DNA of 64,000 nucleotides, from assembly GCF_036971445.1 (NCBI RefSeq), contig NC_091473.1, forward strand, positions 216,194,001 through 216,258,000, written 5' to 3'. How positions within the stretch are numbered: position 1 is the stretch's first letter; every line of letters starts with the position of its first letter. This DNA comes from Narcine bancroftii (Eukaryota). The notes under the pieces were generated by a model. That model saw only the letters and a program-made list of their open reading frames with translations, searched no databases and was not told the origin of the DNA. Made by a program: the position numbers and the translations under genes. Shown piece by piece: positions 9,401-41,877 of the stretch.

Positions 9401-10197
9401 CTCAAGATACAGCGCTGGCATATTACCAATTGAGATCCTACTTGAAGGATAAATTAGGAAGCAGTTTGAGTTTGCCAGAGGGAAGTAACCTTGAAAATGT
9501 GATTACAGATACAATGATAATCAAAAGATTTATATCAAATATGTATATTAAACTGCAAGAAAAGGAGAATGAGGAAACAAATGGTAAAACTAAACAAAAA
9601 TGGGAACAAGATTTAAATATAAAGATAAAAAAGGAAACATGCAAGAAGTTATGATCCGGAACGATGAGAAATACAATAAATATGAGGTTACGTATGATAC
9701 AATATAACTGGATACACAGGCTATACATTACACCTCAAAAGTTAAATAAATGGGATCCAACAGTATCTGATAGATGTTTTCGATGTAAAAAAGAAATGGG
9801 AACAACAATTCATGCAATCTGGACATGTGAGAAAGTAAAAAAATTTTGGGAAGATCTAAATCAGATATTAAATAAAATAACAGAAAACAATATACCAAAG
9901 AATCCAGAGATCTTCCTCCTAAGTAACATAAAAAACAAAGAATTTGGAATTGATTTGGAGGATGCACAAAAAAGATTTGTTAAGATACCTCTAGCCGTAG
10001 CAAAAAAATGTATTATGTCAACCTGGAAATTGGAAGATAATTTGAAAATACAACAATGGTATATAGAAATGAATAAATGTATTCCATTAGAAAAAATAAC
10101 ATATAGTTTAAGAAATAATATTGAAATATTCGAACAAATATGGGAGCCTTACATTAAATACAATAGCGAAAACCTACCGGGGACAATCATTACCTAA
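6401..10197 (+). pseudogene. L1 ORF2p (endonuclease, reverse transcriptase, CCHC) with three lesions
   Basis: QETH, GGDFN, SDH, LDAEKAFD, RQGCPLSP, FADD, CFRC..H..WTC; TGA at 7649-7651, frameshift near 9110, TGA at 9652-9654. Confidence 0.94.
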
Positions 10198-10915: not shown

Positions 10916-11427
10916 ACAGTGTTTCCTTGAGAGGCCAAATGGCCCACTTTCATACTGTATGACAGTTTGATGTCACCCTGGGCCATCCTCAATCGAACCA
11001 GTTTCTCCAGGACCTCTCAAACAACATTATTTCCCCATCTGTGCTGTGAATTGGAGTGAAACTATGTGACTGAGGACCATGTTGGCAACAAGCCTTATTC
11101 TGAGGCTTTCTGACAGGGCTCGGCTTGAAACCCTGGGCTTGTCACTTCTGGTCTGGCTACACCTGAGGCCTTGGCACCTGGTTTTGACAACATGGCCCAA
11201 GGCTTGGGTTTGACCTCAATTGCCTGGCGGTTAATACTAGGCCACAAAGCCTGAGCCTGGAGTTGAGATTTAAGCTACAGAACAGACCCTGGAGTTTAGG
11301 GTGAGGCCACAAAGCCTGGGCCTGTTCAAGTGAAGACAAGAAATCCTAGGCTTTCGACTCTGATTCATCAACCAGCTTGAATTGAAGTCAGTGGATAATC
11401 ATGACACGCAGACTCGTCTCAATAGAA

Positions 11428-11433
11428 TTTATT
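11428..11433 (-). terminator. Putative FCER1G polyadenylation signal AATAAA
   Basis: tttatt on + strand about 425 nt downstream of the stop codon. Confidence 0.6.
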
Positions 11434-11857
11434 GCACAGAGAGAATTCACAGAGAATTGCGAGCAGAAAATAAAGGAAATAACAGGCTGCTTATCATTAA
11501 TTCAACTAGATGAGTTTTACTTCCAGCTTCAAAGATTCAAAGCATTACTGACCCCATCCATGCAAACACAGAGTCCCTTGCCTCTCCTCCTCATATTCCT
11601 CTTCCCCATCACTCAGAGCAGCCTCCTTCCATTCCCATGTTAGAGGAATGAAAGCATCTGAAGGCCCCTCCTACATGATATAGGAGGGGCTGAATAACTT
11701 CCAGGGATAGGAAGAAGGACAGCGAATCTCCACAGTCCAACGAGATATATTGGGAACTATGGCCTTCACACAGAAAAGGACTGAATGACTCTGGACTTGC
11801 GACATCCCTCCCACTACTCCCACCCGCTGCACCCACCCCTGGCTGCCAGCCCCATCA

Positions 11858-11923
11858 CTACACTTTCCCAGGAACCTGGCCTCGCAGAGACTCGTATGTA
11901 TCAATGTGGTGTTCATTCAGACC
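11858..11923 (-). CDS. FCER1G: FCER1G last coding exon: GLNEHHIDTYESLRGQVPGKV*
   Basis: Completes ITAM YTGL-x7-YESL; CAG acceptor; TAG stop. Confidence 0.93.
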   Translation of the reverse strand, partial: GLNEHHIDTYESLRGQVPGKV

Positions 11924-11934
11924 CTGTGGGGGAG

Positions 11935-12640
11935 GGAGAAAGAGAGGGGAGGTTAGAGATACATTGAAAGATGGGGGGGCGGGGGGGGGGCTAAACAGAG
12001 TGGGAGAGGGGTTAGAGATCTGAGCAGAGAGACAGGTTTGTGATAAATGAGGGGAATTAGAGAAAAATTGAGGAGAGAGAGGTTCATGATAAATCGGAGA
12101 GGAGAGAGAGGATTAGAGATAAACAGAGGGAGGGGGGTCAGAGATAAACAGAGAGGGGAGGGAGAGAGAGAGAGAGAGAAAAACAGAGGGGGGGTTAGAG
12201 ATAAATTGAAAGGACAGTGAGAGAGATAGAGAGGGGTGGTGGAGAGAGAATGAAAGGGAGAAGGGGATTTAATCAGAGAGGGGCTAGAGATAAACTGAGG
12301 AGAGAGGGGGGTTTGTGATGAACTAGAGTGATGGTTAGAGATAAATCAAGAGGGGGTTTAGATAAATAGGGAGGGAGTTAAAGATAAACAAAGGGAGGGA
12401 GAGAGAGAGAGAGATGTATATGAGATATGAGATAAAAGTGTATGAGATAAAGGGGTTTGTAATAGATTCAAAGAGAAACAGGGAAAGGGAGTCGGAGATG
12501 GAGAAGAAAGTGTGACAAATTGGACGAGAGAGATAAAGAGTGGAAAAGCTCTGAGAGAAAGAAATGGGGAGAGAAAGAAAAAATAGGAACAGAATGACTG
12601 AGGAAGTTGAAGGGAGAGAGAGTTTGGGGGTGGGGGGAGA
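11935..12640. repeat. GA-rich low-complexity repeat (agagataaa...ggggtt units) in the last FCER1G intron
   Basis: Almost purely purine on +; recurring ttagagataaa. Confidence 0.8.
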
Positions 12641-12653
12641 AGGTATGTCATAC

Positions 12654-12674
12654 CGTGTAAATTCCTTCTTCTTT
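12654..12674 (-). CDS. FCER1G: FCER1G 21-nt microexon: KEEGIYT
   Basis: Equivalent of the mammalian KSDGVYT exon; polypyrimidine tract and TAG acceptor, GTATGA donor. Confidence 0.92.
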
Positions 12675-12939
12675 CTATGAGGAAAAGAAAGATTAGAAAT
12701 AAGTTATTGAACAAGCAAATGTGTCCCATCACACTCGGGGCGTGGGTCAGACAAAAGTCTGCAGATGCTGGGAGGTACTCAGAGGTCGCACAGTGACATC
12801 AGTCTGTATATCGTTACCTCCTATGACACTGTGAGACCTGCTGGGTCACTCCAGCACTTCAGCATGAAGCTCCCTGGATACCATCCCATCACCCACTCCC
12901 AGGCCGCGATCACTGGACCCCAGCTCTCTGCCTCGGACC

Positions 12940-15130
12940 CTGTATGTTGTGCACCCTCTGCTGCCTCCCCATCTTCTGGGATTATGTCCATGCCCATGTG
13001 TTCCTGGAAAAGGAGCATGTGCTGGGGACTTTTTTTTTCTTCGCCTTCAGGAGGGCACGTGACTCCCTGTGGTGAATATCAACATTGCCAACTTGTGGGA
13101 GCTGCCTGGTTTCTTTCTGGAGTTATTACATGTCCGGGGTATGGCCGTCTCCTATTGGTGGGTATCGAGGGGTGAGGAGTGGTCCTAGCATATCCGGAAT
13201 TACTATTGGATCCAGGGTCTGAATCCTTTCTTGGGAACTGCTCTGACACAACATGAGCTGCCTTGTGGAGATGCCCACTGTTCGGTCTCATGAGGCACCA
13301 AGGCATTCATTGTATTGAATGTTCCATCTGGACGCACCCTGGTGGTCCGTTTTACTCCCCTGGAGCTGAAGGAGGTCTCTTTACAAGGGAGTCCTCCTCT
13401 GCTACATTGGAGCCCTGGTGTGCAAAATATTGTACCGAACTGGACCATGCAACAGATTTTTTTAAAGTCGGTTTACTGACACCCCAACACCTGCCATTTC
13501 TGCGGCCAGGAGGAAACGGTGTCCCATGTATATATGGAGCGGGAGAGTTCGCAGCCTCTATTTGAATACCCTCAAGCTCTGGTTACATTTCAGTCCCCAC
13601 ATTCCTAATGGGGTGGGGGTGGGGGATGTGGGTCACTTGTAGGACCTCCTGGTCTGTTTTCTCCTGGGCCCGACCAAGTTGGCCATTCATGGGTTCCAGG
13701 CAGTGGGCAGTCGAGGGTTCAGCCCGGGCTGCCTCCCCATCTTCTGGGGTTATGTCCATGTGTTCCTGGAAAAGGAGCATGCGGTGTCCACGGGTACAAC
13801 GGGGGATTTCCAGGACTGGTAGGCACCACAGGGTCTCGAGTGTGTTCTGGACGGTGATGACTGTGTTATAATTTGAGCATGAAATGCTGTAATATTGTAT
13901 TAATGTGATTGATTATAAACCACTTTTGAAAAAGGGAAATTAATAGAGCAAGGGTAATTGTACCCAGCTATCAGCTCTCCACCTCAGGACCCTGCAGAGA
14001 TACCTGTACACTGAGAACCCTTCACGATGGCATACGCTGGTGGCAATTTTCTTCACCAGGGGCACTGCTTTCAGGAGAACACACGACTCACAGCAGTGAA
14101 TATCAACAATGCCGCTCTGTGGGTGCTGCCCAGTCTCTTTTGGGAGTGGCACAGTTGATGTAGTGGTTGCCACATTCCCTTTATAGCATCAGCAAATGGG
14201 ACCATGGTTCCACACTGTCTGCAAGGAGTTTGTACGTCCTCCCCATGTCTGCAACGGTTTTTCCTGGGTGCTCCGGTTTCCTCCCACCATTGGAAACGTA
14301 CCTGGTGGGGTGGGAGGGGGGGGGGGGTGTTGGTTAATCGGGCAGCACGGACTCATGGGCCAAAATGGCCTGTTACTGTGCTGCATGTCTAAATTAAAAA
14401 AAATTATTGAGTTGCTGTGTTTGGGGCATGGTTGCCTCCGGTCGGAGTGCTCCTTCGCCAGCAGAGAGGAGTGTTCTGGCTGTGGGAGAGGCCAGTCCTT
14501 ATCCCGTCGCTGTGGGTATCAAGGTGTGGGGAGATTTCAGCTGCGCTGGCCCCATCGTTCATTACTCACTGGACCCAGGACCCGAAATCTTTCCCACAAG
14601 CTGCCTGTGGAAATGCCCACTTGTGCCATTTTGCAATGCGTCGGCATATTGTCCACTTCCTTGCCCTCACTTTCCATCCACACGCACCGCGGTAGTCTGT
14701 TTCCCATCTGGAAATGAGGGAGGTCCCCAGTGGAGGTTTCTTTACAATGGAGTCCTCCACTTTTACTTTGGAGACCCGGGGTGGAAAACATTACACAGAA
14801 CAGCCTCGAGTGATTGATTCTTAAGTCGGATTATAGACTCCCTGACTGCTTGTCATTTCTGTGTCCGGGAGGAGATAGCGTACCAGGGATATACTGAGTG
14901 TGACAGGTTGCAGCCTCTATTTGAAGGAGCTGCTCCACAGGTTCTGGCTATATTTCAGTTCCATGCTCCTGATCTTCAGTCACCCAATAGGGGGGGGGGG
15001 GGGGTTTGTGAGGGAGATTTCCTGGTTGGTTTGTTTCTGGGCTGATAGATAGTTAGATTGTGGACAGTTGAGGGTTCAGCCCAGGCTGATGGTCTGCCCC
15101 CTTCTGGGGTTACATCCATGTCTGTGTGTC
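12940..15130. repeat. Locally duplicated fragments of an unclassified interspersed repeat
   Basis: cttctggg(g/a)ttat/catccatg at ~12972, ~13740, ~15100; 13200-13600 resembles 14580-14970. Confidence 0.55.
14190..14405 (+). mobile_element. V-SINE-like element
   Basis: V-domain core ggagtttgtacgtcctcccc...gggtgctccggtttcctcccac. Confidence 0.7.
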
Positions 15131-15142
15131 TCAGGAGAAGCT

Positions 15143-15375
15143 TTAGACATACAGCAAGATCACAGGCCATTTCAGCCCACGAGTCCATGCCGCCCAATTT
15201 ACACCCCATTAACTCACAGCACCCGGTACGCTTTGAATGGTGGGAGGAAACCAGAGCCCCCAGGGAAAACCCACACAGACACGAGGAGAACGTACAAACT
15301 CCTTACAGAGAGTGCAGATTCAAAGCACAGTCCCGATGCCGGCGTTGGGCAAAACGCTACGTCAACCATGCCACT
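15143..15375 (-). mobile_element. V-SINE-like element
   Basis: Reverse V-domain core tgggaggaaaccagagc...gtacaaactcc. Confidence 0.7.
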
Positions 15376-15524
15376 ATTGGATGCCACAGGGGTTCTTGTG
15401 TGATCTGAGAAGTGATGACTGTTATAATTAGAACCTGTAAATAGTTTGCATCTTGGAGTTCAATACCTGTGTATTAATGTGACCTTGCATAAGTACTGAA
15501 AATATCACCCTTTTTAAAGTGAAA

Positions 15525-15800
15525 ATATGGGCATAGGTCAGAGGGAACCTCTCTCTAAATGTCCCATCGCACACTTCCAGGGCATGGGTCAGATCCAGGG
15601 AAAACCTCCCACTACATTGTCCCATCACACACTCCCAGGGCTCGGGTCAGACCCAGGGGGAACCTCCCTCTACATCATCCCATCGCACACTCCCAGGGCA
15701 CAGGGCAAACCCAGGGGAAACCTCCCACTAAATGTCTCATCACACACTCCCAGGACATGGGTCAGACCCAGGGGAACTTCCCTCTACACCGTCCCATCAT
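15525..15800 (+). repeat. About 57-bp interspersed minisatellite (cccatcacacactcccagggcacgggtcagacccag...ctccctctacac)
   Basis: About 5 degenerate units; same family at 33160-33345, 38240-38480, 39905-40310 and 41950-42260. Confidence 0.85.
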
Positions 15801-15827
15801 ACAGTTCTGATTTGATTCAACACTTAC

Positions 15828-15902
15828 CTTATTTTTTCCATGAGCTGTTGGTTTTTCATCCTTCAGTTCCTCGTAAATGTCTGCATTTTCTTTCTGCATT
15901 TG
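15828..15902 (-). CDS. FCER1G: FCER1G extra exon 4 (75 nt): QMQKENADIYEELKDEKPTAHGKNK (alternative acceptor would start at 15893)
   Basis: Unique stop-free island between two tandem arrays; TAG acceptor; perfect AAG|GTAAGT donor; phase 0-0; contains DIYEEL. Confidence 0.8.
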
Positions 15903-15939
15903 CTAATTAGGACACACAGACCGATTAAATTATGCACAT

Positions 15940-17045
15940 GGAACAGTCCGTACCCCATCACAGGGGATTAACCCTCTCCCCACCCACACACAGGTCAGTT
16001 CGTTCTCCATTGCAGGGGATTAACCCTCTCCCCACCATCATGGGACCATCCATTCCCCATCACAGGGAATTAACCCTCTCCCCAACCACACATGGGTCAG
16101 TCTGTTCTCCATTCCAAGGGATTAACCCTCCCCCCACCCTCATGGGACCGTCCATTCCCCATCACAAGGGATTAACCCTCTCCCCAACCACACACGGGTA
16201 AGTCTGTTCTCCACTGCAGGGGGATTAACCCTCTCCCCACCCAACCATGGGTCAGTCCCCCATCACAGGGGATTAACCCTCTCCCCACCCTCATCAGACC
16301 GTCCATTCCCCGTAGCAGGAGATTAACCCTCTCCCCATCCACACACAGGACAGTTTTTCCCAATGCAGGGGATTAACCCTCTCCCCACCCTAATCGGACC
16401 GTCCATTCCCCATCACAGGGGATTAACCCACTCCCCACCCTCATGGGACCATCCATTTCCCATCGCAGGGGATTAACCCTCTCCCCACCCAAACACGGGT
16501 CAGTCCATTCCCCATCACAGGGGATTAACCCTCTCCCCACCCTCATGGGACTGTTTATTCCCCATCGCAGGGGATTAACCCACTCCCCACCCACACACGG
16601 GTCGGTCCCTTCCCCATCATAGGGGATTAACCCTCTCCCCACCCTCATCGGACCATCCATTCCACATAGCAGGAGATTAACCCTCTCCCCACCCACACAC
16701 AGGACAGTCTGTCCCCATCACAGGGGATTAACCCTCTCCCCACCCACACTCAGGACAGTCCGTTCCCCATCGCAGGGAATTAACCCTCTCCCAACCCACA
16801 CACGGGTCAGTCCATTCCCCATTGCAGGGGATTAACCCTCTCCCCACCCACACACGGGTCAGTCCGTTCCCCATCACAGGAGATTAATCCTCTCCCCACC
16901 CTCATGGGATCGTCCATTCCCCAGGGGAGGGTATTAACCCTCTCCCCACCCACACAAGGGGCAGTCTGACCCCAGGGGAGAGGATTAACTCTCCCAATCC
17001 AAATGTGACAGCCCGTTCTGCACTGGAGGGGGTTAATCCTCTCCC
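15940..17045 (+). repeat. About 52-bp tandem repeat filling FCER1G intron 3
   Basis: About 20 units of ccccatcacaggggattaaccctctccccaccc...gtccattc. Confidence 0.93.
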
Positions 17046-17122
17046 TATAGTGGGAGAGTAGTGTCAGTCTTGAAATGGAGGGGGTTCTGTCTCGCAAGTC
17101 CTCCCTGGCTCTCCTGCCTTAC

Positions 17123-17173
17123 CTCATAATTAGAGACATTCGCTGATGGTTTACTCTTCTTCCGCTCTAAGAT
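17123..17173 (-). CDS. FCER1G: FCER1G exon 3 (51 nt): ILERKKSKPSANVSNYE
   Basis: Equivalent of mammalian IQVRKAAITSYE; CAG and GTAAGG boundaries; phase 0-0. Confidence 0.9.
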
Positions 17174-17435
17174 CTGTGTTGATTCATGAGGAAGGTCGAA
17201 GTGAGTCTTTGACATGTACAGAAATTGAATACCCAACTCTTAAAAGCAAGCAAAATGGCAGGAGGGGCCATACTGCGCCTCCAATCGGGCCCCATGCGGC
17301 TGATCTGAAACCTCAGCTCCCCTCCCCAGCCACTTCTCTTGGATGCCCTTAATAGTCCCAAACTCAGTGACTTATCCTATCAATCTTTTGACAGAGATTG
17401 TAAAACCATGAAAATCTGTAGGCACTGTGGCTAAA

Positions 17436-17570
17436 GTAAAAACACAATGCTGGAGAAACTCAACTGGTCAAATAATGTCCTTTATATAGCAAAGGTTTTG
17501 ATAAAGGACTCAAGACGATATAAAGGACACCGTTTGACCTGCTGAGTTTCTCCAGTTTTATGTTTTTTTC
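17436..17570. mobile_element. Fold-back (inverted-repeat) element, probably Penelope-derived; relatives at ~18530-18630, ~37575-37690, ~62835-62930
   Basis: gctggagaaactca..ggtcaaa...gtcctttatat paired with atataaaggacaccgtttgacctgctgagtttctccag. Confidence 0.65.
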
Positions 17571-17953
17571 CCTCAATAGAGGAGTCCCACAGTTTCTGCA
17601 GGCAAGAATCCCAAAGATACCCCTCAGGAGGAAGAGATTTCTCTCATCTTTGCCTTGAACAGCCAACCACCCCCCACCCAACTCTGAGACTAACCCCCTG
17701 GTTCTATTTACCCCTCACCCTCAACTTATTGTTTTGAAGAGAACGTTCCATTCTTTTAAAGTGCGTTAGTGAGTTAAAGAAAGGATGTGAGTTAAGAGCA
17801 AATGACTCAAGGACCCCTCTCTCCCTGCACGCTGTGTCACTGACTGCATCCCCACTGATATCATTTCACCCTCCCTTGTACTGTCCGTCAGTGACTGCTC
17901 TCCCCCAGCACCCCGTGTCATTGCCTGTACTCTTCCTGATATTAACTCCTCAC

Positions 17954-18045
17954 CTTCAGACGACAGTACAGAGCTGTTAACACCGTTCCGTAGACAAAGA
18001 GAATGGCATCCAGCACATAACAAATCTCGGGTTCCTGCAGTCCAG
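17954..18045 (-). CDS. FCER1G: FCER1G exon 2 (92 nt), transmembrane: (A)[30 protein letters not shown]
   Basis: Matches FcR gamma TM [27 protein letters not shown], including the dimerising Cys and intramembrane Asp; AG and GTGAGG boundaries. Confidence 0.97.
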
Positions 18046-19113
18046 CTGCCCAGAGAGAGGAAGAGGTGAATATGGTTCTGGCTCAAAGAAGACAGGAATC
18101 GACGAGATATTCCCAGTGTCTCTGGTCCTATCACCCACCCTCCCCATGTTACGCTCTCTTTCTCTCTCTACTCTCTCTCTCTCATTTTCCTTGTCCCCTC
18201 TTTCTCTTCTGTCTCCCGTCTTCCCTTGTCTCTTCTCTCTCCTCTCTCCATCCCTTGCTCTGCCTCCCTCTGTCGTTAACACCACTCTCCAGCCAGACAG
18301 TATTAACGTCGGCCTCCAGTTTCTGCTAGCCGACTCTCCATTCTCCCTCCCTTCCCTCCCTCTCACTTTGTCCAGCTCTCCGCAGCCTTTCCTCTTCATT
18401 CACAAAGCCATCCCTCTTCCCCTCACTTGCCAGTGTGCCCTCCCTCATCCATCTATTCCCTCCTGCCTTTGGGACCTGTGCTCCTCCTCCCCCTCCACCA
18501 TTTTGTTCAGACACCTGCCAACATTTTTTCATACCTTAACGAAGGGTTCAAGCCCAAAATGTTGATTACATATCATTGCTACATAGAGGACACTGTTTGA
18601 CCTGCTGAGTTTCTCCAGTAATGTATTTTTACTTTGTGATGGAATTGTGTTATTATTATTCTTTAGTATCATATATATTTCAGAAAAGGCTTTGTGGGTG
18701 GACAGTGACAGAGACACTCTTAGAGACACACACAATTACACACAATTTTCAGGGACTCTGCCTCTGGAAAAACAGAGCAATAAAAAAAAGCTGGAACAGT
18801 AGTGTTTGCGTGTACACAAAGAGGACTACTGCTTCAATGATCAGTGTACACAAACCTGGCTCTTTGTGGCTTCAGCAGACAATTTGGAACTTTTGGAAGA
18901 GGTGAGACTTGAAACAGAAGCAGAAGTGATGATCAAAGCAAGTGATTAAGGACATTTGAAAAGCTGCATTTTAATATTACACCAAGACACATCTGAGGTC
19001 AAAATGCAATGAGGTTCTGTGAGGAAAGAACTACTTGTGTTCTCCTTGTCAAGGGAGGAACACAAAATTGTCATGGCTTTGGAAAGGATGGCTACTTTGT
19101 GGCTTCTCTTGGT

Positions 19114-19146
<33 letters not shown>

Positions 19147-19694
19147 AGTGTTGCAGTGGGATTTTAAATAGCCACTGGTGACTGACTTAATTGTGGGTAA
19201 AAGAAAGCAATATCATTCTTATGAATCGTAACCATTGAGATGGTTACTTCTTCAGACTCGTACATGGGAAATCATCGTGGGAAACACAGATACTGAAACC
19301 TCAATGCAAGGGGTGGGAATCATTTATATGAAGAAACAATTCTCTGAAAAGAACTCTACCAGAATTCTGGGAGTTTTGAGAAGTCTCGGGCCTCACACCT
19401 ACTCCACAATTACTTTTGTGCAACAATTTAAAGTCGGAATTTCAACACAAAACGGACTGAACTTTAAAAGTTGATTCTTTTTACACTCATACCCAAACTG
19501 TAATGGTTTTGGGACCTGCCCCCTCTCCCCCCACAAACACACTTGTGCACAGTGAGGGTAAGTAAAGAAAGAAAAGAAGAAACGTTTAGAGTTAAGTAAG
19601 AAGTGTTATATTTTGAAGATACCATTGTCTTGGTGAATTTCTAATGCTGCTGGACCAAGAGGTAACAACTTCAACCATGGTGTCTACACACTTT

Positions 19695-20275
19695 CATGAT
19701 TTTTCTCTCTCATGCCTCTCCCTCTTTTGTCTTTCTCCTCATGTCTCTTTCTTTCCCCCATCCTCCGTGTCTGTCTCTCTCTCTCTACACCTCCCCTTTT
19801 CTTTCTGTCTGTTTCTCTCTCCCTCCCTGACTCTCTCATTCTGTCATGCTCTTCTTTCTCCTGCCTTTCTCACTCTGTCTCTCCCTCCCTACTCTATCCT
19901 CCCTCTGTCTCTTTCACTTTCTCCTGTCTTTCCCCCCTCCCCGTCTCTCTCCAGAATGTCTCTCAAGCTTCCTCCTCTGTCTCGTTCCTTTGTCCTCCCT
20001 CACTTTATTCCTCCTCCCTGTGCCCCCTCTCATGTCTCTCTCACTCCTTTCTGTCCTCGATCTCTCTCCCTCCCCTCTCTCTCCTCATTCTCCTTTCTCT
20101 ATCTCTCGCTCCTCTTCCTCCCCAGTCTCTCGCTCTTCCATCTCACTCTGTATCGCTTGCTGTCTCTTTCTCCTCTCTTTTCTGCCTTATGCCTCTCTCT
20201 CGTCTTTTGCACTTACTCCTCTCGTTCCTCTCTCCTCTTTCTCACTCTTGTTCCTCTCTCCCTCTGGTCTCCCCT
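19695..20275. repeat. CT-rich low-complexity tract
   Basis: Nearly pure pyrimidine on +. Confidence 0.85.
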
Positions 20276-21361
20276 TAACCATTTCAGTTAGGCTGGAGAG
20301 AAGCTCCTGGGACAAGGAAAGTAGTTCTGGGGATGGCACGATGTGTACTGGCAGACAGAGCTGTGGGCCTTGCCCCCTGAGGAGTGAAACCAGTCTGGCC
20401 GGGAAATGGGAAGTTGAGCAGAAAGGTAGAGAAAGAAAGGCTGGAATGTAGTCATGCTGTGCCAAGTGTGTAACCTCAGTGCAGGAGGTGGTGAACAAGG
20501 TGATGGAGCTGAGAGAACATAGATGCATGACAACAGCTGTGACTGAAGAGGTCAGGTCTGGATGCTTCCCATTCCCTGTGAGAGGGATACGGTGAGGGGC
20601 TGGGAAAAGGAAGACAGGGAACGACTGGCTCATGGAACAATCATGTGTATCCAGGAACAGGCCAATCAGCCCCTCTAGTCGTCTCTGCTGTTTCACGATA
20701 TCCTACATGATCCAACCATAACCTCAATCCCATCCCACCCATCACCAGTGACCTTTCACCCTCTCCTAACAAAAACCTTGACTTAAAAATATTCAAATTC
20801 TCTGCATCCACTGGCCTTTGAGGAAGAGAATTCCAAAAACTCACCACCAAGAGAAACAAGTCCATCTTCATTGGATGTCCCCTTGATGGTAACTTCTCAA
20901 TTTCACCCCTTCCCTCCTTCTCCTCGATGAAATGCCCTCTCAGGTCTCTTGGCCTCTAATGGGTTTCAACAGTCCTCTCTCCCTTTTCTACAGTGGAACA
21001 GACAATCCACCCCCCCCACCCCCCTGCCCCCACCAGTGCTGGGAACAGTTCTGTCCAATACTTCCTTCAAAAAGCTGCCCATTCCGGTTGTAGGGTCAGA
21101 GATGTCAGACACATCACCAAATGAGGCCAATGGGATTCCTGTTGACCCAGGGAGGGTCATTCATCCTGCTGAGTCAACGGCAGTCACAGAGCAATCACTA
21201 ATTTCCCTGTAACATTCTCAACTTCCTGCTAGCCTCCGTAGATTCCATCCCCTCTCACTAAGTGAAGTTAACAATGTCCATTTAACCCACTGAAAGATGG
21301 GAGGAAAATGGACAACCTGGGAAAAATTTACTGGGAGAGGATTCAAACTCCACCAGGACAT

Positions 21362-21939
21362 CTGTGTACCAAGAACATTTAATATTCCTGCTTGTTTTGG
21401 TCACAGACTGTCAGAGGCCTAACCTTGATGGAAAATAAACCATTGTATTCAAAGTGATAAGCTGAAAATTACGTTATTCGATAGAAGCCTAGGCATGCTA
21501 GCTTGCTCGCTTATCTTTCTTACTGTGCTGGGAATAGGTGCTTAGGTAAGCAGTTTTTGGGTAATATAAGCCATGGTCCCGCTGCTGAAGTTTGAGACTC
21601 TCCGAGAGGTGGCAACATCTCTCAGCAAGAAGAAGAACTTCTAGAGTCCAGTTAACATCCCGGTCGAGGGAGGTGGAGAAGCTGCTACCGGCGCCCCGAC
21701 AACCTACTACAAGTGTGTGGTCGTTGCCTCGCTTCGGCAGTTGGGACCAGTCCAGGCATTGATAAGAATAATTGGGAAGGGCTAGCATATTGTAGTGTGA
21801 ATTCAGCTTTAGATTTAGTAATAAAGACTTGTATAAACTGAACTGCTCTCGGTGTGTGTGTCTATTTTCTTTCGGTAGTTCAAACACTGTGACCAATTTA
21901 AAACGAACAAAGTGAGAGGTACAAGTTTACCCAGGACAT
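21362..21939 (+). mobile_element. Putative LTR-like insertion
   Basis: TG start at 21363, internal AATAAA followed by a GT-rich tract; ccaggacat direct repeat at 21353-21361 and 21931-21939. Confidence 0.4.
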
Positions 21940-23204
21940 ACCTAGAAGGCTAAAACTTGATGCTAATTTACTTTTTGAACTTCCTAATGAGCTCCGGTCA
22001 GAGCCATCATTATGACCCAATTCCAATGACTCACGTGGTTTCGCCTGCACGCGCTACAAGCACGTACTGTTATTTTTGTTGCTGCTGGTGTTTATATGGT
22101 CGCTGTTTTTGACATAAATCTGGTGTTTTAGCAACAATATTGTGGTCATTAATATCTGTGAACCGAGATCAATAACTTTTTTGAGAATGTAAAATCAACA
22201 TAATTTTGATGTAGTTCTTAAACACTTATTTCAAATTCTATTGTTTTCTTACTGAATTTTCACTTTAACCACATGAAACGATGTAAATGTAAATACATTT
22301 AGGCTGTGTGTATGATGTTGGAATTTAAAGGTGTAATTTTAATTTTGCTAGCTGTTTATCTCACTCCTATTGTCTTTACATTCAGTGATACACGGGAATT
22401 ATGATTTATGAGTAGCATTTTAGTACAAAAAAAATTACTGAAGATAAAAGAACATAAGAAATAGGAACAGGAGTCGCCCATCCTGCCCATCGAGCCTGCT
22501 CCGCCATTCAATAAGATCATGGCCTATCTGATCATTGACTCAACTCCACCGACCTGCCTTTCCCCCATATCCCTTAATTCTTTTTTTTATGTAAAAATCT
22601 AACTGAACCTTAAATATTTAACGAAGTAGCTTCAATCTCCTCTCTGTATGGTCTGGTATGAGAGGAAGCCCATGGTTGGGGGTGGGGGGGCGGGGAAACG
22701 TGCTGCTGACACCACGAGTTAAAGCGCTGGGTGACATCAACCCTAGTGATGCCACTGGTTTCCGGTGTCAGGCTGGGGTCTGGCTGAAGAATCCTGGAGC
22801 CATGAAGTCATGATTCTACTCACTGACACTGTGCAGCTATCAAAGTAAAAACAAAGGGCCGGAACAAAGGGCACCACAGACCTCCACACAGACACAAATG
22901 GAAGGGAGAATTTATGGACAGATTTCTGACCACCACACAAAGTTTGGAAAAGGACGTTGGGAAATTTTAATTTCTGTATTAACTGGGGTGTAAACTGTGA
23001 TCATAATTCCCAGTTACCTCCAGAAGGTATACAGCAAGCAGGGCAATTCTTGTGGGGTGATGCTGGGCAGGTTGGAGGAAGATCTGTAGGGGAGCATTTT
23101 GGTAGTAGTGATCAGAATTCAGGAGATTCAACACAGTTATGGGAAAATACAAAGATAAAAGTAGTAGAGTTCCTGGCTTTACCAGACTGACATGACGCAG
23201 CACA

Positions 23205-23460
23205 AGTGGGCGGCCAGTTTGGCGTATCGGTTACCACATTGCTTTTACAGTGCCAGCGACTGGGACAGGGGGTTGAATTCCGCACTGTCTGTGAGGAGTT
23301 TTTATGTTCTCCCGTATCAGTGTGGGGGTTTTCTCCAGTGGGCTCTGGTTTCCTCTCACTGTTCAAAACATACTGGGATGTCAGTTAAATGGGTTTAAAT
23401 TGGGCAGCACAGACTCATGGTCCGAAATGGCCTGTCACCATGCTGTGTGTGTACATATTT
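23205..23460 (+). mobile_element. V-SINE-like element with tRNA-like head
   Basis: A/B-box-like head (tggcgtatcggtt...ggttgaattcc) plus V core. Confidence 0.65.
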
Positions 23461-23594
23461 TTAAAAATTGGTTTAAAAGTGGATGGGAGGAGGATCGGTG
23501 AAGGGAGGTGGGTCGTGGATAATGGAAAGTGTTTAAGGAGGAGGTTCAAGGGAGTCAAGATAAACACATATCCATAAAAAAACCCATGTCCCGA

Positions 23595-24280
23595 TCCTCC
23601 TGAGTGACAGATTAGAAGGTAAAGAAGGTTGGGATTCATTTCTACAGGAATATTATACACTGTAAGAGCAGAGATGCAATGTTGAGGTGCTATAGGCCAC
23701 TGGCGAGACCTCACTTGAGAACTGTGTACAATTTTGGGCTCCTCATTTGAGAAAAGACATGGTGGCGTTGGACAGAATTTACTAGAATAAAAACAGGATT
23801 GAAAGGTTTAGCACATGAGGAACATTTGTCAGCTCTGGGACTGTACTCATTGGAGCACAGAAGGATGGGTGTGGGGGGGGGGGGGGGTGGTTTGAACGCT
23901 AAAAGGCCTGGATAGAGTAGATGTGGCAATGTTTTCTCCCCATGGTCGTGGATTCCAGGACAAGAGGGCACAACCTCAGGATAAAAGGGTGTCAATTTAA
24001 ACTGGAAAAGTGGAAAAAATTCTTTAGCTAGAGGGCCATGAGTCTATGGAAACAACCTATTGTTCTGGATTTTTAGTGGAGAGCATAAACTGTTTATGGT
24101 TGGGACTCCATGGTGTATTTAAGCCAAAGATTGACATATACTTGATTAGGCAGGGCATCAAGACTTCTGGGGTGAAAGCCGGAGAGAGGGGGTGAATGGG
24201 GAGGGAGGGGGAAAGAGATGGATCAGGACATGGGAAAATGCCAGAGCAGATGATTAGCCCACTTCTGCTCCTCTATCTTT
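23595..24280 (+). mobile_element. Decayed CR1 LINE 3' fragment
   Basis: RPHLExCVQFW-like and LGLYSLE-like remnants. Confidence 0.7.
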
Positions 24281-25869
24281 TGATCTTGTGAAGGGAAGGA
24301 TGTTCAACTTCAACAACACAAGGACTGAGGTACAGTGAGAAATTTTGTTTTGCAGCCACCCCAGTTGGCTCAGGTTTGAATCTGCCCCTGTCTGTAAGTA
24401 GTTTGTGTTGTTGCAAACTTGTTTTTTTAGGGAGCATTACTTTGGCGGTTGGCTCAGGGTGCAAAAACACTCTCAGATTTCATAACAACATTTTTCAAGA
24501 CAGCCTGACACCATGGAGTCCCAACCATAAACAGTTTATGTTCTCCACTAAAAATCCAGAACAATGGATTGTTTACCCAAGGAAAGACATCTGGTGAGAG
24601 AGAAGTCATGATTCTGAGTCATTTTTTGAGACTGAAACAGAAATCAGTATCCTCAGCAAGTCATCTAAAGACACTGAAGTGAAGCCTTCGTGGGAAATGG
24701 AACTTCTGCTGCTTGTCTTTGCCAGGAAAAAGTGAACCATTGTAATGGCCATTTTGCTCGATCTACATCTGGGTGAAAACACCAGGAGAATTGTTTCATT
24801 GGACCATGAGCATTTTGATGGTCATTTCATCTGTCTCTTGCCTTGTGGAAGTCACACATATAATTTCCCCTACACAAGGAAGAGGGGAGTTTTGACAACC
24901 ATTCGTATGAAAGAACATTTCTCTGGAAGCCACTTGACAAGAATTCATGAGATTTTTGGCAATCCGATCACTCAGTCTCTCACCTCCTTCGTATTTACTT
25001 CTGAACATCAACTTAAAAATTCGAGTTTCAAAATGGGAGTTCTAAGACTGAACTTTGGGAATCGACTTTTCAGAATTGTGCCTCACCTCTAATGGTTTGA
25101 GTAATCCACACCCATATACATATATAGGCAGATTTGTGCATAATGGGGTTAAGTTTAGATTTAAGTAAGATGTTATATTATTAGTAAATTAAAATATTGT
25201 TTTAAAAATAAGATTGCCATGGTGAATTTCTATTCCTGCTGGGCTGACGTCACAGTATGCTCTCCTCACATCTGTATGGACTTCCTCCCACCCTCCAAAT
25301 CGCTAGGGAGTTAGTCAGTTAATTGGGTGGCACAGGTTTTATGGGGTAGAAGGGTCTTCTACTGTGGTGCATTGTTAAAATTCAACCAGCGCTCAGACCA
25401 GTGGGTTTGAAGAGCATAGACTAGCTGGCACAGACAGCTGGCACAGACAGGAAGGGTCAAACTAACTGGCACAGACAGGAAGGGTCAAACAGCTACCTTG
25501 ATTTAAAAAAATTCTGATTTTTTTTCCCCCTCTCCACCTTTGTTTCACCCCTCAATCCACCTCTCCTTTCAATCTCTCTTCCTCTCTGACCTCCTGGTCT
25601 GTCTGCCTCCCTCTCCCCTCCCCCACCTTTCTGGGTGAGAAAAACTGCAAGGTTTATTTTTTGCCTCTCATGTGAAAGCACTCTCATTGTTTGCAACAAT
25701 TCAGAGTGTGGAAACAGCAGAACCACAAATTGTGTCTGGCTGTTCCTGTCTCTTCCCCCCACCCCCCAACGATGCCTCGACAAGAGGGCCGATCAGGCAA
25801 GGACTGGTAGGGCGAGGGAGTTGTCATCCAGTGCGTTTTGCGCCACCTACCCTCACTTTGGGATTGGCA

Positions 25870-27450
25870 GATAGAAACATAGAAACATAGAAGATAGGAG
25901 CAGGAGTAGGTCATTCGACCCTTCGAGTCTGCTCCGCCATTCAACGAAATCATGGCTGATCTTAAAGTTCAGTACCCCGTCCCCACCTTCTCTCTGTAAC
26001 CTTTAATACCCTTATACTGAAGAAATATATCTAATTCCCTCTTAAATATATTTAATGAACCTGCCTCTACTGCCCTCTGTGGCAATGAATTCCACAGATT
26101 CACCACCTTCTGGGTAAAGAAATTCCTCCTCATCTCGGTCCTAAATGGTTTGCCTATTATCCTCAAACCATGGCCCCGGGTTCTGGATTTTCCCATCATG
26201 GAAACATCCCATCTGCATCCATTCTGTCCAGTCCTGCCAGAATTTTATATGTCTCTATGAGATCCCCTCTCAACCTTCTAAACTCCAGCGAGTACAATCC
26301 CAATTTGCGCAATCTTTCCTCATAAGTCAATAGACAATAGGAGCTGGAGTAGGCCCTTCGGCCCATCGAGCCAGCACCGCCATTTTGCAGATCATGGCTG
26401 ATCACTACCATCAGTACCCCTTTCCTGCCATTCCAGTATCAGCCTGGTGAATCGCCTCTGCACTCCCTCCATTGCAAGAACATCCTTCCTTAGATCAGGT
26501 GACCAAAACTGAACACAATATTCCAGGTGTGGTCTCACCAAGGCCCTGTACAGCTGCAGTAAGGTATCCTTGTTCCTATACTCAAACCCTCTTGATATGA
26601 AGGCCAACATACCATTTGCCCTTTTAACCTCCTGCTGTACCTGCATGCTCGCCTTCAGAGACTGGTGTACAAGTACCCCTAGGTCTCTCTGCACTTCCCC
26701 ATCTCTTAATCTATTGCCATTCAAATAGTAATCTGCCCTCCGGTTCACATCCACATTGTATTGCATTTGCCATGTATCTGCCCAGTCCCTCAATTTATCC
26801 AAATCACACTAGAGCTTCCTGACCCCCTCTTCCATGCACACAACCCCTCCTAGCTTAGTGTCATCTGCAAATTTGGAGATATTACATCCAATCCCCTCAT
26901 CCAGATCATTAATGTAAATTGTGAACAGCTAGGGTCCCAGTACAGATCCCTGTGGCACCCCACTGGTCACCGCCTGCCACTCAGAAAATGAGCCATTTAT
27001 CCCAACTCTCTGTCTTCTACCTGCCAGCCAGTTCTCAATCCACATCAATACTTTGTCCCCAATCCCATGAGCCTTGATTTTGGAAGCCAATCGTTTATGT
27101 GGGACCTTATCGAAGGCCTTTTGGAAGGTACACCACATCCACTGGCTCTCCCCCATCTATTTTACCTGTCACCATCTCAAAGAATTCCAATAGATTTGTC
27201 AAGCACGATTTACCTTTTGTAAATCCATGTTGACTCTGTCCGATCCCTTCTCTGCTAGTCATATGCTCCGCTATTACATCCTTAATAATGGATTCCATCA
27301 TTTTGCCCACTACTGATGTAAGGCTCACTGGCCTATAATTCCCCGCTTTTTCTCTACCCCCCTTTTTAAATAGTGGGGTAACTTTAGCTACCCTCCAATC
27401 CATGGGTACTGATCCTGAGTCTATTGAGTTCTGGTAAATAATTCTTAAAG
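25870..27450 (-). mobile_element. CR1 LINE, 5'-truncated, with a nested ~100-bp CR1 3' tail at ~26328-26425
   Basis: NYRPVSLTS, QHGFTKGKSCLTNL, FQKAFDKVPH, GVPQGSVLGP, RPHLEYCVQFW; (atagaaac)n tail. Confidence 0.92.
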
Positions 27451-27479
27451 CATAATTCTTAAAGATAATATGGCCAAGA

Positions 27480-28560
27480 GTTCTGGAACATCACAGTGTA
27501 ACTTATATCAGTCATACCGATATAGAACAGGGTGTTTTGGTCACTGTGATCTAGAGCAGACCTCAATTGGTGCTCCATTCAAGAAAAGTTTGCCACAGAA
27601 CACGGCTATGTTGATCTAGAACCATAACTTAGGGTAATTGCAATCTGCGACAATAGCAAATAATATGACTATTATTTAGACCAACATGGCAAGACAGTCA
27701 CTAAACAGCAGCAGATCACAGGGTGCAGTGCCTAAGTTAGAACAGTTCATCACAAGATTACCAAACCAGAACATTATTTTACAGGGTTTCAGTAACTGAT
27801 CTAGAACCTTTGGTCTCAGGAATGGTGCCTTTCTGATCTAATTCAGTGACTAAAGAGAACAGGTTGAGAGTGATCTATAACAGGGATTGCAGGGAACTAG
27901 GCAGATGGATCTAGATCTAGAACATGGACCAGCCTGGCTTCAGACCATTCGGGGGGGGGGGGGGAAGTGTTCTACAACCAGGGCCTTGGCAGCCAGCTGA
28001 TCAATAATGGGGTAAGATGATCTGGAACAGGGTTACCTTGATCAAGATTATGGCACAGGACCACATTGATCTCAGCGAACAGAGTCAGACTGATCTAGAA
28101 CAGAGGCCACAGCGAATAGGTTCACCTTGATGTAGGACAGGGGGCTGCAGGGAACAGGGCCATGCTGTCTCATTCAGGGGATTTCAGGGAACAGGGTTAG
28201 ACTTGAGAACATGGGCTCACAGGGAATGGGCTCAGGCTGATCTAGAATGGAGGCTGCAGGGAATTGGTTCACCCTGATGTAGGCCAGGGCTCTGCAGGGA
28301 ACAGGGTCAGACTCTAGAACATGGGCTCACAGGGAATGGGCTCAGACTGATCTAGAACAGAATGCAGCAGGGAACAGGTTGACATTACTCTAGAATAGCA
28401 AGTCAAAGAAGAATGATCTAAAAACAATGCTTCAGAAAGGAGAGGGTGGCTCTTCTCCAGAATAACAAGGCAAAGAATGCAGATTGCTCCAATCTAGAAC
28501 AGCAAGTCATAGGGTAATTGATCTTAATCATGGAGAGCAGGGTTGATCTCAACTGCGACA
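27480..28560 (+). repeat. Old degenerate tandem array with conserved core TGATCTAGAACAG
   Basis: Recurring gatctagaac/gatctggaac cores with irregular spacing. Confidence 0.75.
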
Positions 28561-31169
28561 TTAGCTCAGGATCCAGATCACTCCATTAGGGCACCACATG
28601 CTTCTCCTCTTCCAGCAACACTGGGCACTCCACCCCCCCTCCACCACTGATTCAACATCCAGCCGATCGAGGTGATGCTTTGTCCTAGGTGGGGTTGAGC
28701 TTCGAGAGCTTCTCACATTCACCCAGGCAGGTGGAGAGTGTTCCTCAACCCTCGACATGCAACTGTAGATGAGGAAAAAGCTGGGGTCAGGTGGGGGGGC
28801 AGGGGGGGGGGGGAAGACACTCCCGATAGGATGGCCCTGTGGATGCAGTTTGGTGACTGGTCCTCTCCAGTGCCTGGTCAGTGGTGACCCCAGAATGTGG
28901 ATGGTGGGGACTGGGTGATTTCAGGAAGGGGTGGAGTTAGACTCATCTTGGTGGAGAGTCAGTGCCTCCACTTGTGTGGTCTGAATGTCGCCCACCTCTG
29001 ATCAGCTTGTGCCTGCATGTTGCCTAGGGATCACTAGTCTAAGTGAATGGGCGTGGACATGGCCAACAGGATACAATGTGGAAAAATAGAAAACCAGGCT
29101 ATAGATTGAGAGAGATGATACATGGGTCCCTGGGCATTGGAATGAGATGGTTGGTGTTGGGAGGGTCTGGGACATCCCGGGATGGGATGGTTGATGTTGG
29201 GAGGGTCCTAACTCCTTGGATACCAGTCACTGCAGAAAAAGCAGAGTCCAGAGGAAGAGTCTGTTGGCCTTTGTTGAGAGAGGGGTTGAGTCCAAGAGTC
29301 GAGACGTCTCATTCTGATGATCGAGGTTCCCAGGGAGATCACATATTGGGGACAGGTCTGATATCCCCACCTGAGGGAGTACCTACCTGTGGGAGAGGGA
29401 GTGCAGCAAAGGTTCACCGGATCGATTCCCAGGATGGCAGGAAGTGAAGCAGACTGGGACTGTCCTCTCTGGGGTTTAGGACAAGAGGTGAACCCACTAA
29501 TGCCTAAACTCCTGTCGGGGTGGATGTGGGGGTAGGAAGTCCTGAACCAGGGACCCAGTGTGGGTTGGGTGGATCAGGTCAGAGGTGTGGAGAAATCTCT
29601 TCTCCCAGAGGGTGTGGGGGCCCCGTCATTCTCAAATACTCCGGGGCTTCGGAGAAGGGGCCAGTGGTGTTCCTGAACACCACCAAAAGTAAAACTAGAA
29701 ACGGCAAGAGACTCAGAACTCCAAGATGCAGAGGACCCACAGGATAGTAATCAGAATCGTTAATATAGTGTAGTCAGTCTCAGTAAAAGATCCTGACCGA
29801 AAACATCCACTGGCCATTTCTACCTGCGGATGCTGCTTGACCCACTGAGTTCTTTCAGTAGCTCATTGTTTGCTCAAGGTTCCAGTATCTGCAGTTTTGT
29901 GTGGACAGAATTGAATACAAAAGCTGTGAGATTGTGCTTCAGTTTGGTAGGTGTAGCATCCATAACAGGGAAGAATGCATGCATTACAAAATACTTCAGA
30001 CATTAACTGGACTGAGATCTTGGTCGACACAGACAAGTTGGGCTGAAGGGCCTGTTTCCACATTGTATGACCTGATGACAGAGTGAGCTATCAGGCGAGG
30101 AAAGGTGAGTGCGAACAGAAGAGCGAGTGGGTTTTGATTAAAATGCTTGGCTGTTGAAGAGGACATCTGCTGCAAGAATCGTGAACCATTAAAAAAATAG
30201 ATGACGCTCTCTGTCGGGAGTCTCCCTCGTGGTCACGAGGGAACAGAGGGCTTGCAGCAGGAGCAGTATTGGTGATGAGTGAGGAGACGAGTCTGAGGTT
30301 GGAGCTGGAGTAGCCACTGTTTATTGAACAGGGAGAGGCCACATTTTAACAGCCTGATACGATAGGCACATGGGTGTAAGAAAAATAGTGTTATAGGTGT
30401 GAGGTAGGGAGAGATGAAATTGTTGTGTGGGATTACATAGGGTCAGCATATCGTGGGCTGTAGGGTCTGTACTATGCTGTAATATTCCACATGGGGGATT
30501 GAGAGGAGTGATGTTTTCCTCAGTGAGGGGGGAAGGTTTGGAACTCTGACCGAGGGATTGAGACCCTGGCCAACATCCTGGCCAAGGAGTTAAGGGCCCA
30601 CAGGCCGGGATCATGGGCCAGAGGGGCAGCGAGGTGAGCTGCCCTGCTGCGAAATGGCCCCTCTCCCAACCCCTGCACGATAGCCTAGGTGCAAACTTTC
30701 ATTCACCACAGCAGCTCGCCTGTCCCTGGTTTGTCTCAGGCAGCAGAGAGGTGAAGTCCATCTTCTGCACACGACACTATTATCACCCCTGGTCTATTTC
30801 ACAACAGGAAGAGAGACTGGAACCAAAATTAAACTGCGCCATTTTAGTCAGGGGGTCCCGACCACCATTTCGCGTGATTGAGAAGCAATGCTGAAGAAGA
30901 TTGAGCCACTGCTACCTCCATGGCCAGCTCTGTAAATACAAAGCCCCCCTTCTCTCTCCCAAATGACCAGTTGTTCAAGCTGGCATCCCAAAGTCCAAAT
31001 GAAGGCCTCATTGACTCTCCAAAAATTACAGCATCCTGTAAATCCAGCCCCAGCCCTTTAAATTTCACAATCCTTTGGTGTGGCCCACCCTGCCTGCCTT
31101 ATGCCCACACAACCCAGCACCCTCTCCCTCGCCATCACTAAGCCAGCCTCCTGATGGACACAAATTAAC

Positions 31170-32060
31170 CTATCTGGGTGCAAGGACTGGAGGGAATAAT
31201 AGGGATAAGGAGGGGTGCAGGTAACCAGAGGTGGTTACATAGCTGGAGAGGGGTGTAGGGGTCCAGTGGGTAGGCTGGAGTGGTAGGGCAGAGATAGGAG
31301 TAGGGGACCAGAGGAAGTTACAAAGATAGGGAGAGATGCTGGGGACCAGAGGGAGTTACAAAGATAAGGAGAGGTGTAGGGAACTGGAGGTTAAAGAAAT
31401 AACAGACCAGAGAGGGGAGGGGGTGTGGTACAGAGATAGGGAGAGGTGAGGAGACCAGAGGGCGGTTGCAGAGAAGGCAGGGATGCAGCAAACTGGTGTG
31501 CAAACAAAGATAGGGTGGGGTATAGGGTCTGGAAGGGGATTGGGAGAGGTGTAGGAGTTGGAGGGGGTTACAGAGAGATGGAGGGGTGTAGGGTCCAGAG
31601 GGGTTAACAGAGAATGGGAGGAGTTACAGACCAGATGGGGTTACAGATATACACAGAGACAGGGAAGAGTGTAAGGGTTAGAAGGAACTTCAGAGAGATG
31701 TGTGTAGGTCTGGAGGGGTTAGAGATTTGGAAGAAAAGGGGCCAGGTGATATTGCAGAAATAGGGAGGATGCCGGGGACTGGGGAGGGGGTGAATAATCA
31801 AGGGAGGGAGAACTTCAGGGACTGGTGGAGGCCACTGATAGGGTGGGTGTAGTGGCTGGAAGATTTATAAAGATAGGGAGGGGTTCGGAAGGGAATCAGT
31901 GGAGGTCTGGGATTCAGAGGAGGTTGGAGAGATAGGGAGGAGTGTCCGGATCAGAGGGGCTCACGGAGATAAGGAGTGGTGTGGAGTCCAGGAGTGAGAG
32001 ATTTGGAGGTGATGACAGACTATGAAGGTGAGACTGATGGAGGAAGGGGTTGTAGGATGA
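31170..32060 (+). repeat. Degenerate G/A-rich minisatellite (gggttacagagataggga...)
   Basis: Units of about 40 nt, gggttacagagata-gggagaggtgtagg. Confidence 0.75.
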
Positions 32061-32173
32061 GAGTGGGGAACATATCCTGGCTCTGGGGTGCCAGATATCG
32101 ATATCATAAACCATGAAGATGGGGCAGGGGGACATCCCATAAGAAGCTAGAAAAAGGGAAAGGCCTGACTTAC

Positions 32174-32222
32174 CAGCTGAAGAGGAGTGAAATAGGAAGA
32201 CGAGGGCAAAAATAGCCTTCAT
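32174..32222 (-). CDS. FCER1G: FCER1G exon 1 (49 coding nt), signal peptide MKAIFALVFLFHSSSA
   Basis: Kozak CCACCATG, hydrophobic leader, G|GTAAGT phase-1 donor; length and phase fit FcR gamma exon 1. Confidence 0.9.
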
Positions 32223-40326: not shown

Positions 40327-40384
40327 CAATAATTGCCACCACATCCGCCAACATGTGTCCTTCTGCCATCCTGTCGAGTCCAGC
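40327..40384 (-). CDS. NDUFS2: NDUFS2 exon 13 (58 nt): AGLDRMAEGHMLADVVAII(G)
   Basis: Homology plus AG and GTGTGT boundaries. Confidence 0.97.
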
Positions 40385-40490
40385 CTGAAAAGGAGAAAGG
40401 AAAGAGTCATTTCCACAGAGGAGAAATGAGACACCTATAGAAATTGGAGGGAGAGAGGGAGGGGTGTGTGAATGGCAGGAGTCTTATCTA

Positions 40491-40862
<372 letters not shown>

Positions 40863-41140: not shown

Positions 41141-41229
41141 CTGTGGGGGTGGGGGCAGATAGATGGTGAGTGAAGGGAGGGTGGCTCCACATGCCTTCCC
41201 ACTGTGGTGAGCTTCAGCTTTGGATTTTA

Positions 41230-41877
<648 letters not shown>

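Follow-up and report, generated by a model that had tools for sequence, protein, structure and literature searches.

A stretch of 64,000 nucleotides (nt) from the lesser electric ray Narcine bancroftii (assembly GCF_036971445.1, NC_091473.1, positions 216,194,001 to 216,258,000; here called the window, in whose numbering all positions are given) was analysed around a minus-strand gene that we assigned to FCER1G, which encodes the Fc receptor (FcR) common gamma chain. The mammalian and teleost layout of this gene, with five exons and a single ITAM (immunoreceptor tyrosine-based activation motif), is not that of the ray gene, which has six exons and two ITAMs.

The FCER1G gene of Narcine and its transcript

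Six minus-strand exons joined in frame to a protein of 117 amino acids (aa). The internal exons were all preceded by AG and followed by GT.

32174-32222, minus strand: FCER1G exon 1, coding part, 49 nt; ATG at 32222, signal peptide, translation MKAIFALVFLFHSSSA, ends in phase 1, donor GTAAGT.
17954-18045, minus strand: exon 2, 92 nt; encodes a short ectodomain, which carries the dimerising Cys, and the transmembrane (TM) helix, which carries the conserved Asp.
17123-17173, minus strand: exon 3, 51 nt; juxtamembrane stretch ending in ..SNYE, of which YE forms the first two residues of the first motif (ITAM1).
15828-15902, minus strand: exon 4, 75 nt, phase 0/0; extra cassette QMQKENADIYEEL plus linker, completing ITAM1.
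12654-12674, minus strand: exon 5, 21 nt; KEEGIYT, the last two residues of which open the second motif (ITAM2).
11410-11923, minus strand: exon 6, GLNEHHIDTYESLRGQVPGKV; coding part 11858-11923, stop codon TAG at 11858-11860, then the 3' untranslated region (UTR); 3' end approximate.

The product was the same as XP_069797273.1 ("high affinity IgE receptor subunit gamma-like", Narcine bancroftii, 117 aa), so the ray gene model was already public in RefSeq. Compared exon by exon, the translations fell at consecutive positions 1, 18, 48, 65, 90 and 97 of this protein, exon 1 matching its residues 1-16. Exon 2 was the sole 92-nt candidate between AG and GT with a TM-like open frame in the 15-kb gap that follows exon 1. 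An AATAAA at 11428-11433, about 425 nt past the stop, gave a 3' UTR of about 0.43 kb.

Both motifs were split by introns. ITAM1 reads YEQM-x7-YEEL and is interrupted after YE by the intron between exons 3 and 4. ITAM2 reads YTGL-x7-YESL, is interrupted after YT by the intron between exons 5 and 6, and is preceded by the 21-nt exon. Counted from tyrosine to tyrosine, ITAM2 begins 32 residues beyond ITAM1.

Transcription was examined in four public runs from one study, chosen by presence of the 3' exon and available as Logan contigs labelled only "RNA?". The contigs were compared with 11410-17409 of the window. Each run contained a contig with a depth of 950-2800, compared with 4-27 in the introns, a difference of about 100-fold. 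Joints at 11922/3->12653/4, 12674->15828 and 15902->17123 were present in all four, and every skipped stretch, read along the minus strand, was bounded by GT..AG (CT..AC on the plus strand). The depth ratio and the exact removal of the introns indicated that the contigs were cDNA. Exon 6 was covered from 11457 to 11922. The junction between exons 2 and 3 was seen as a loose contig end at 17175, which equalled the plus strand from 17956 onward, i.e. the 3' end of exon 2.

Exon 4 was joined on both sides in these high-depth contigs, and the 75-nt exon was thus part of the assembled mRNA. The Narcine FCER1G gene is transcribed as an mRNA containing the extra exon. No variant letters were seen within the exons, exon 4 included. 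A joint between exons 3 and 5 that skips exon 4 (17123->12674) was not seen in the Narcine contigs, which drop minor isoforms and give no inclusion ratio.

Exon 4 contains a further AG, 9 nt in (15894-15902, minus-strand CAAATGCAG), as a possible alternative acceptor. If used, it would remove QMQ and abolish the YEQM half-motif. The upstream acceptor, at 15902, was the one used in the RNA contigs of all four runs.

Minisatellites flank exon 4 without overlapping it. One, at 15935-16966, makes up most of intron 3 (52-nt unit x20, or 102-nt x10), and the other, at 15603-15803, lies in intron 4 just downstream of the exon (58-nt unit x3.5). Exon 4 was considered as a part of these tandem repeats and rejected as such: both arrays stop short of it, and a 65% 'copy' was an extension artefact. 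Intron 4 also carries two inverted copies of a very abundant repeat (14213-14312 and 15215-15314, 82% complementary, 902 nt apart). Over these copies the RNA contig depth was 4,000-30,000, far above that of the FCER1G exons, with many spurious joints. They look like an expressed SINE-type (short interspersed) element; no tRNA was found in them by ARAGORN.

The TM exon matched the Pfam family PF11628 at 56.2 bits (cut-off 25). Among PDB entries it scored 43.8 bits with FcERI gamma (residues 19-47) and 35-39 bits with CD3 zeta. Exons 4 and 6, searched separately against Pfam, gave no match, their length being insufficient for the ITAM model. Exon 2 encoded both the ectodomain Cys and the TM Asp.

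A maximum-likelihood tree was built from 33 gamma or gamma-like and 14 zeta proteins. The branch separating zeta from gamma was supported at 100/100, and the Narcine protein grouped with the gamma chains of Leucoraja, Mobula and Hypanus at 97/95. The CD3 zeta gene of Narcine, CD247, was found as a separate protein with three ITAMs on another contig, and was placed among the batoid zetas.

The neighbouring gene was recognised from its conserved peptides.

40184-48488, minus strand: NDUFS2 exons; the 5' end of the gene lies beyond the mapped part.

Positions 1-30, 91-137, 137-180 and 211-242 of PF00346 were colinear on the minus strand. NDUFS2 therefore lies directly upstream of FCER1G on the same strand, about 8 kb from exon 1. 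The same adjacency was revealed in other vertebrates by mispredicted fused NDUFS2-FcRg proteins (three cases).

Judged by its sequence, the locus is the single-copy FCER1G orthologue, as indicated by the TM score, the 100/100 split in the tree, the synteny with NDUFS2 and the separate Narcine CD247. The six-exon, two-ITAM layout is a variant architecture within this orthologue group and no ground for exclusion from it. The first-pass annotation, made from the letters alone, had placed six in-frame exons at the positions listed above, and the splice sites and the identity to XP_069797273.1 agreed with it. The junctions that it predicted on either side of exon 4 (17123->15902 and 15828->12674) were present in the high-depth contigs of all four runs, as was 12654->11923. 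Its choice of FCER1G over CD247 held in the TM bit scores, in the NDUFS2 synteny, in the existence of a separate CD247, and in the TM/ITAM phylogeny with CD247 that it had proposed, where the ray protein fell inside gamma and was not CD247-like.

The remainder of the window is rich in repeats. Just downstream of FCER1G, at 4851-10197 on the plus strand, lies a nearly full-length L1-like long interspersed element (LINE), broken into several open reading frames (ORFs). Its recognisable parts are an ORF1-like piece with a coiled coil, an endonuclease of the APE type (PF03372, 1e-13), a zf-RVT domain and a reverse transcriptase (PF00078, 4e-33). The region is AT-rich with a strong strand skew. LINE-type reverse-transcriptase fragments were also found on the minus strand at 26.4-27.4, 34.3-35.1, 49.4-50.3 and 59.0-60.5 kb, that is, in FCER1G intron 1, in the spacer between FCER1G and NDUFS2, and among the mapped NDUFS2 exons or upstream of them. 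At 26.4-27.4 kb the ORF tested gave no Pfam match, and the reading there came from translated reverse-transcriptase-like peptides. The NDUFS2 introns hold long GC-rich tandem arrays (41217-41877 and 44380-47013, minus strand) with open frames in several phases, e.g. repeated GGEGTVHARWGRGDSPCSVGERGQSMLG. These frames were rejected as genes and regarded as repeat artefacts of the ORF lists.

Distribution of the two-ITAM form and the first motif of Narcine

The canonical ITAM was defined as D/E/N-x-x-Y-x-x-L/I-x6-8-Y-x-x-L/I. Two canonical ITAMs were found in the gamma chains of nine elasmobranchs (Leucoraja, Mobula, Hypanus, Mustelus, Hemiscyllium, Carcharodon, Stegostoma, Scyliorhinus canicula and S. 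torazame). The chimaera Callorhinchus kept the corresponding segment in a protein of 116 aa, with a degenerate first half (YGIE).

Two ITAMs were also found in more than 20 amphibians from all three orders. These included the caecilians (Gymnophiona) Microcaecilia, Geotrypetes and Rhinatrema, the salamanders (Caudata) Ambystoma and Pleurodeles, and frogs (Anura) from Ascaphus and Bombina to the neobatrachians. One ITAM was found in the bichir-family Erpetoichthys, sturgeon, teleosts, coelacanth, lungfish and amniotes.

In protein comparison the 25-aa cassette was orthologous across sharks, rays and amphibians. The spacing of 32 residues between the two motifs was common to rays, sharks, caecilians and Bombina. 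The second ITAM split after Y-x that the first-pass annotation had derived from a 75-nt, phase-0 exon is encoded by a transcribed exon whose cassette is conserved in related species.

Exon boundaries in other species were inferred from pairs of RefSeq isoforms. Isoforms lacking exactly the 25-aa cassette were present in two species: S. torazame, whose X2 has 93 aa compared with 118, and Geotrypetes, whose X2 has 95 compared with 120. Lissotriton X2 (96 aa) showed the same skipped layout. This indicated that the exon boundaries were the same in shark and caecilian, and that skipping of the exon yields an in-frame, mammal-like protein with one ITAM.

The skipped isoforms read ...YE/x.EG.YTGL (slash, start of the mini-exon), and the proteins of coelacanth, lungfish and amniotes are arranged in the same way. 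The same YE was found before the 7-aa mini-exon in one-ITAM sarcopterygians: DYE/K in coelacanth, NYE/K in lungfish, VYE/K in turtle, VYE/T in alligator and IYE/K in Varanus.

The FcR gamma tails of snakes differed. Crotalus had one ITAM, YEEL-x7-YDTL, without YTGL and apparently beginning at the relic YE; the ITAM may have been rebuilt in this lineage. Pantherophis had the usual YEK..YTGL layout.

In the first motif of Narcine itself, Met takes the place of L/I at +3 of the first tyrosine. Both tyrosines, the x7 spacing and YEEL were intact. Among the elasmobranchs sampled this Met was confined to Narcine; the other batoids had YEHL and the sharks YEEI. The Met codon was taken to be real, since the RNA contigs showed no other letters in exon 4.

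By analogy with FcR gamma and CD3 zeta, the ray protein would form a disulfide-linked homodimer through the ectodomain cysteine, and its TM Asp would pair in a salt bridge with a basic TM residue of ligand-binding receptors. Upon receptor clustering, Src-family kinases would phosphorylate the ITAM tyrosines, and the tandem SH2 domains of Syk or ZAP-70 would bind to each ITAM phosphorylated on both tyrosines. The ray dimer would then offer four docking sites, versus two in mammalian gamma and six in zeta. On the same analogy, the Narcine FcR gamma would couple to activating receptors and signal through Syk.

YxxM is a motif of the PI3K p85 type. The YEQM of Narcine may therefore bind Syk-type kinases more weakly or add a site of this type. 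In the extreme, ITAM1 of Narcine would not be a working ITAM but a YxxM (PI3K p85-type, DAP10-like) site, a half-ITAM or nothing, and signalling would effectively be that of a one-ITAM chain. The restriction of the Met to Narcine, with its codon confirmed by the RNA contigs, is in line with such a loss, as is the degenerate YGIE of the chimaera. On the other hand, the tyrosines, spacing and second half are preserved, Met is a conservative hydrophobic replacement, and all the other elasmobranchs sampled have a canonical motif here. We regard a non-working ITAM1 as unlikely.

Origin of the extra exon

For the comparison of motifs, the four motif-defining positions were masked and the remaining 15 positions were scored, with column permutation (5000) as the null. 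Chondrichthyans and amphibians, compared over the non-motif residues of ITAM1, gave a score of 13.6; the null was -4.3 +/- 4.0, and none of the 5000 permutations scored as high. The scores of ITAM1 with every other ITAM class lay between -6.6 and 4.9.

With ITAM2 the score of ITAM1 was -3.2 (null, -6.1 +/- 3.6). A recent internal copy of ITAM2 was rejected as the source of ITAM1 on these values; the two are too unlike for a recent internal duplication. ITAM1 scored only 1.5-2.3 standard deviations above the null with the three zeta ITAMs (136-405 of 5000 permutations as high), with no specific correspondence to any one of them. Gamma ITAM2 and zeta ITAM3 scored 17.6 against a null of -4.0, and were clearly homologous.

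The presence of the two-ITAM form in all the sampled elasmobranchs and in all three amphibian orders makes it the most likely ancestral form. Sequence comparison thus points, with good probability, to a two-ITAM ancestral FCER1G from which the exon was repeatedly lost. Under this reading, ray-finned fishes, coelacanth, lungfish and amniotes would have lost the 75-nt exon or would skip it permanently.

Alternatively, the ancestral FCER1G carried a single ITAM, the state of teleosts and amniotes, and chondrichthyans and amphibians each acquired an ITAM-completing exon independently. Such convergence takes fewer steps on the accepted species tree: by unweighted parsimony, two gains (on the chondrichthyan stem and on the amphibian stem) stand against four losses. 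On the other hand, both groups have the exon at the same position, directly behind the YE with which exon 3 closes. The cassette is 25 aa long in both groups, and the 32-residue spacing is found in rays, sharks, caecilians and Bombina. The residues outside the motif resemble each other significantly, one-ITAM sarcopterygians still carry the YE half-motif, and ITAM1 is unlike ITAM2. These features argue for a single origin, and we consider convergent gain to be distinctly improbable.

The step count nevertheless weighs against an expressed, working and ancestral two-ITAM gamma chain, as do the following points. The one-ITAM state of coelacanth and lungfish comes from automated models, which may represent skipped isoforms. 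The first half-motif of Narcine, with Met at +3, falls outside the strict YxxL/I consensus. Signalling, phosphorylation and partner receptors in cartilaginous fish are drawn by analogy from gamma and zeta biology. The RNA evidence consists of contigs from a single study with runs labelled "RNA?", and a minor skipped isoform would be compatible with them.

With these points taken into account, the explanation as a whole, i.e. an expressed two-ITAM FCER1G in Narcine, a cassette orthologous to that of Xenopus, and a two-ITAM state that was most likely ancestral in jawed vertebrates, appears to us very probable. A more detailed history is reasonably likely. In it, the first jawed vertebrates had a two-ITAM gamma chain with a skippable cassette, which sharks, rays and amphibians would still use and which would serve as a splice switch in some species; the one-ITAM chain of teleosts and amniotes would be the skipped form made permanent, and the lone tyrosine of the mammalian chain would be a relic of ITAM1.

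That the tyrosine in mammalian 'SYE' is such a relic had been proposed in the first-pass annotation, and the exon-skipping isoforms of shark, caecilian and newt, which match the one-ITAM layout, supported it. The annotation had also proposed an ancestor of zeta and gamma with several ITAMs. Its part concerning gamma, a two-ITAM FCER1G ancestor, gained support; the further step back to the zeta/gamma ancestor was not demonstrated, since ITAM1 resembles no particular zeta ITAM above background.

That the gene is a zeta-like or third paralogue instead of the FCER1G orthologue, as its having more than one ITAM, like zeta, and its RefSeq name 'gamma-like' might suggest, is hardly credible, as the 100/100 split puts the protein beside the other batoid gammas, Narcine CD247 is a separate gene, the NDUFS2 synteny holds, and the gene has a mini-exon of 21 nt and a YTGL..YESL tail, both typical of gamma.

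Relation to known systems

The number of ITAMs sets the gain of immunoreceptor signalling, and designers of chimeric antigen receptors pick zeta, with three ITAMs, or gamma, with one. If cartilaginous fishes and amphibians have kept the two-ITAM gamma for more than 400 million years, the single ITAM of mammals would be a reduced, derived state. In some lineages exon skipping may adjust the number of ITAMs, to four or two per dimer. As cartilaginous fish have the common gamma chain, activating receptors that couple to it may reasonably be sought in sharks and rays.

For this window alone the result is modest, the gene being annotated in RefSeq and its six-exon, two-ITAM architecture already published for Xenopus. 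Guselnikov et al. (2003; 2015, PMC4536121) described an FcR gamma with six exons and two ITAMs, in which an additional exon gives the second ITAM and an intron lies within the first tyrosine module. They called this "a unique feature of X. laevis FcRgamma", in comparison with the five exons and one ITAM of mammalian FCER1G (PMC4536121). The gamma chain has also been stated to be absent from cartilaginous fish (PMC4016189, PMC5742104), with Akula et al. cited for that view. The wider pattern contradicts both the claim of uniqueness to Xenopus and that of absence from cartilaginous fish. If true, the ancestral two-ITAM reading would also overturn the opinion, found in the literature, that bony fish were the first to have the gamma chain. 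Our literature search, in which most subscription journals were not covered, found no paper on a chondrichthyan FcR gamma or its ITAM number. The occurrence of the exon across the sampled elasmobranchs and the amphibian orders, the likeness of the non-motif residues and the YE relic appear to be unreported.

CD3 zeta, that of Narcine included, resembles the ray gamma chain in belonging to the TM family PF11628 and in having multiple ITAMs, each split after Y-x. Its last ITAM (YQGLS..TYD.L) is homologous to gamma ITAM2. It differs in having three ITAMs and an LCY[IL]LDGILF-type TM with YL[KR]L, in lying on a different chromosome, and in falling on the opposite side of the 100/100 branch.

Mammalian FCER1G has a 21-nt mini-exon ahead of its last exon, which begins with GL. 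The mammalian protein (PDB 8zgs, 8ywa and 8k7t) resembles that of the ray in the TM match at 43.8 bits, in the adjacency of its gene to NDUFS2, and in a C-terminal ITAM of the YTGL..YETL type. Unlike the ray protein, it has a single ITAM; the first half of ITAM1 in the ray is replaced there by a lone tyrosine ahead of the mini-exon.

Xenopus laevis and X. tropicalis shared the most with the ray in architecture: six exons, of which the extra one gives a membrane-proximal second ITAM split in its first tyrosine module, a TM with Cys and Asp, and a C-terminal ITAM of YTGL-x7-YETL/YESL. On the other hand, their linker is shorter, with 27 residues from tyrosine to tyrosine against 32 in the ray, and their ITAM1 reads YEHL..YEKI where that of Narcine reads YEQM..YEEL.

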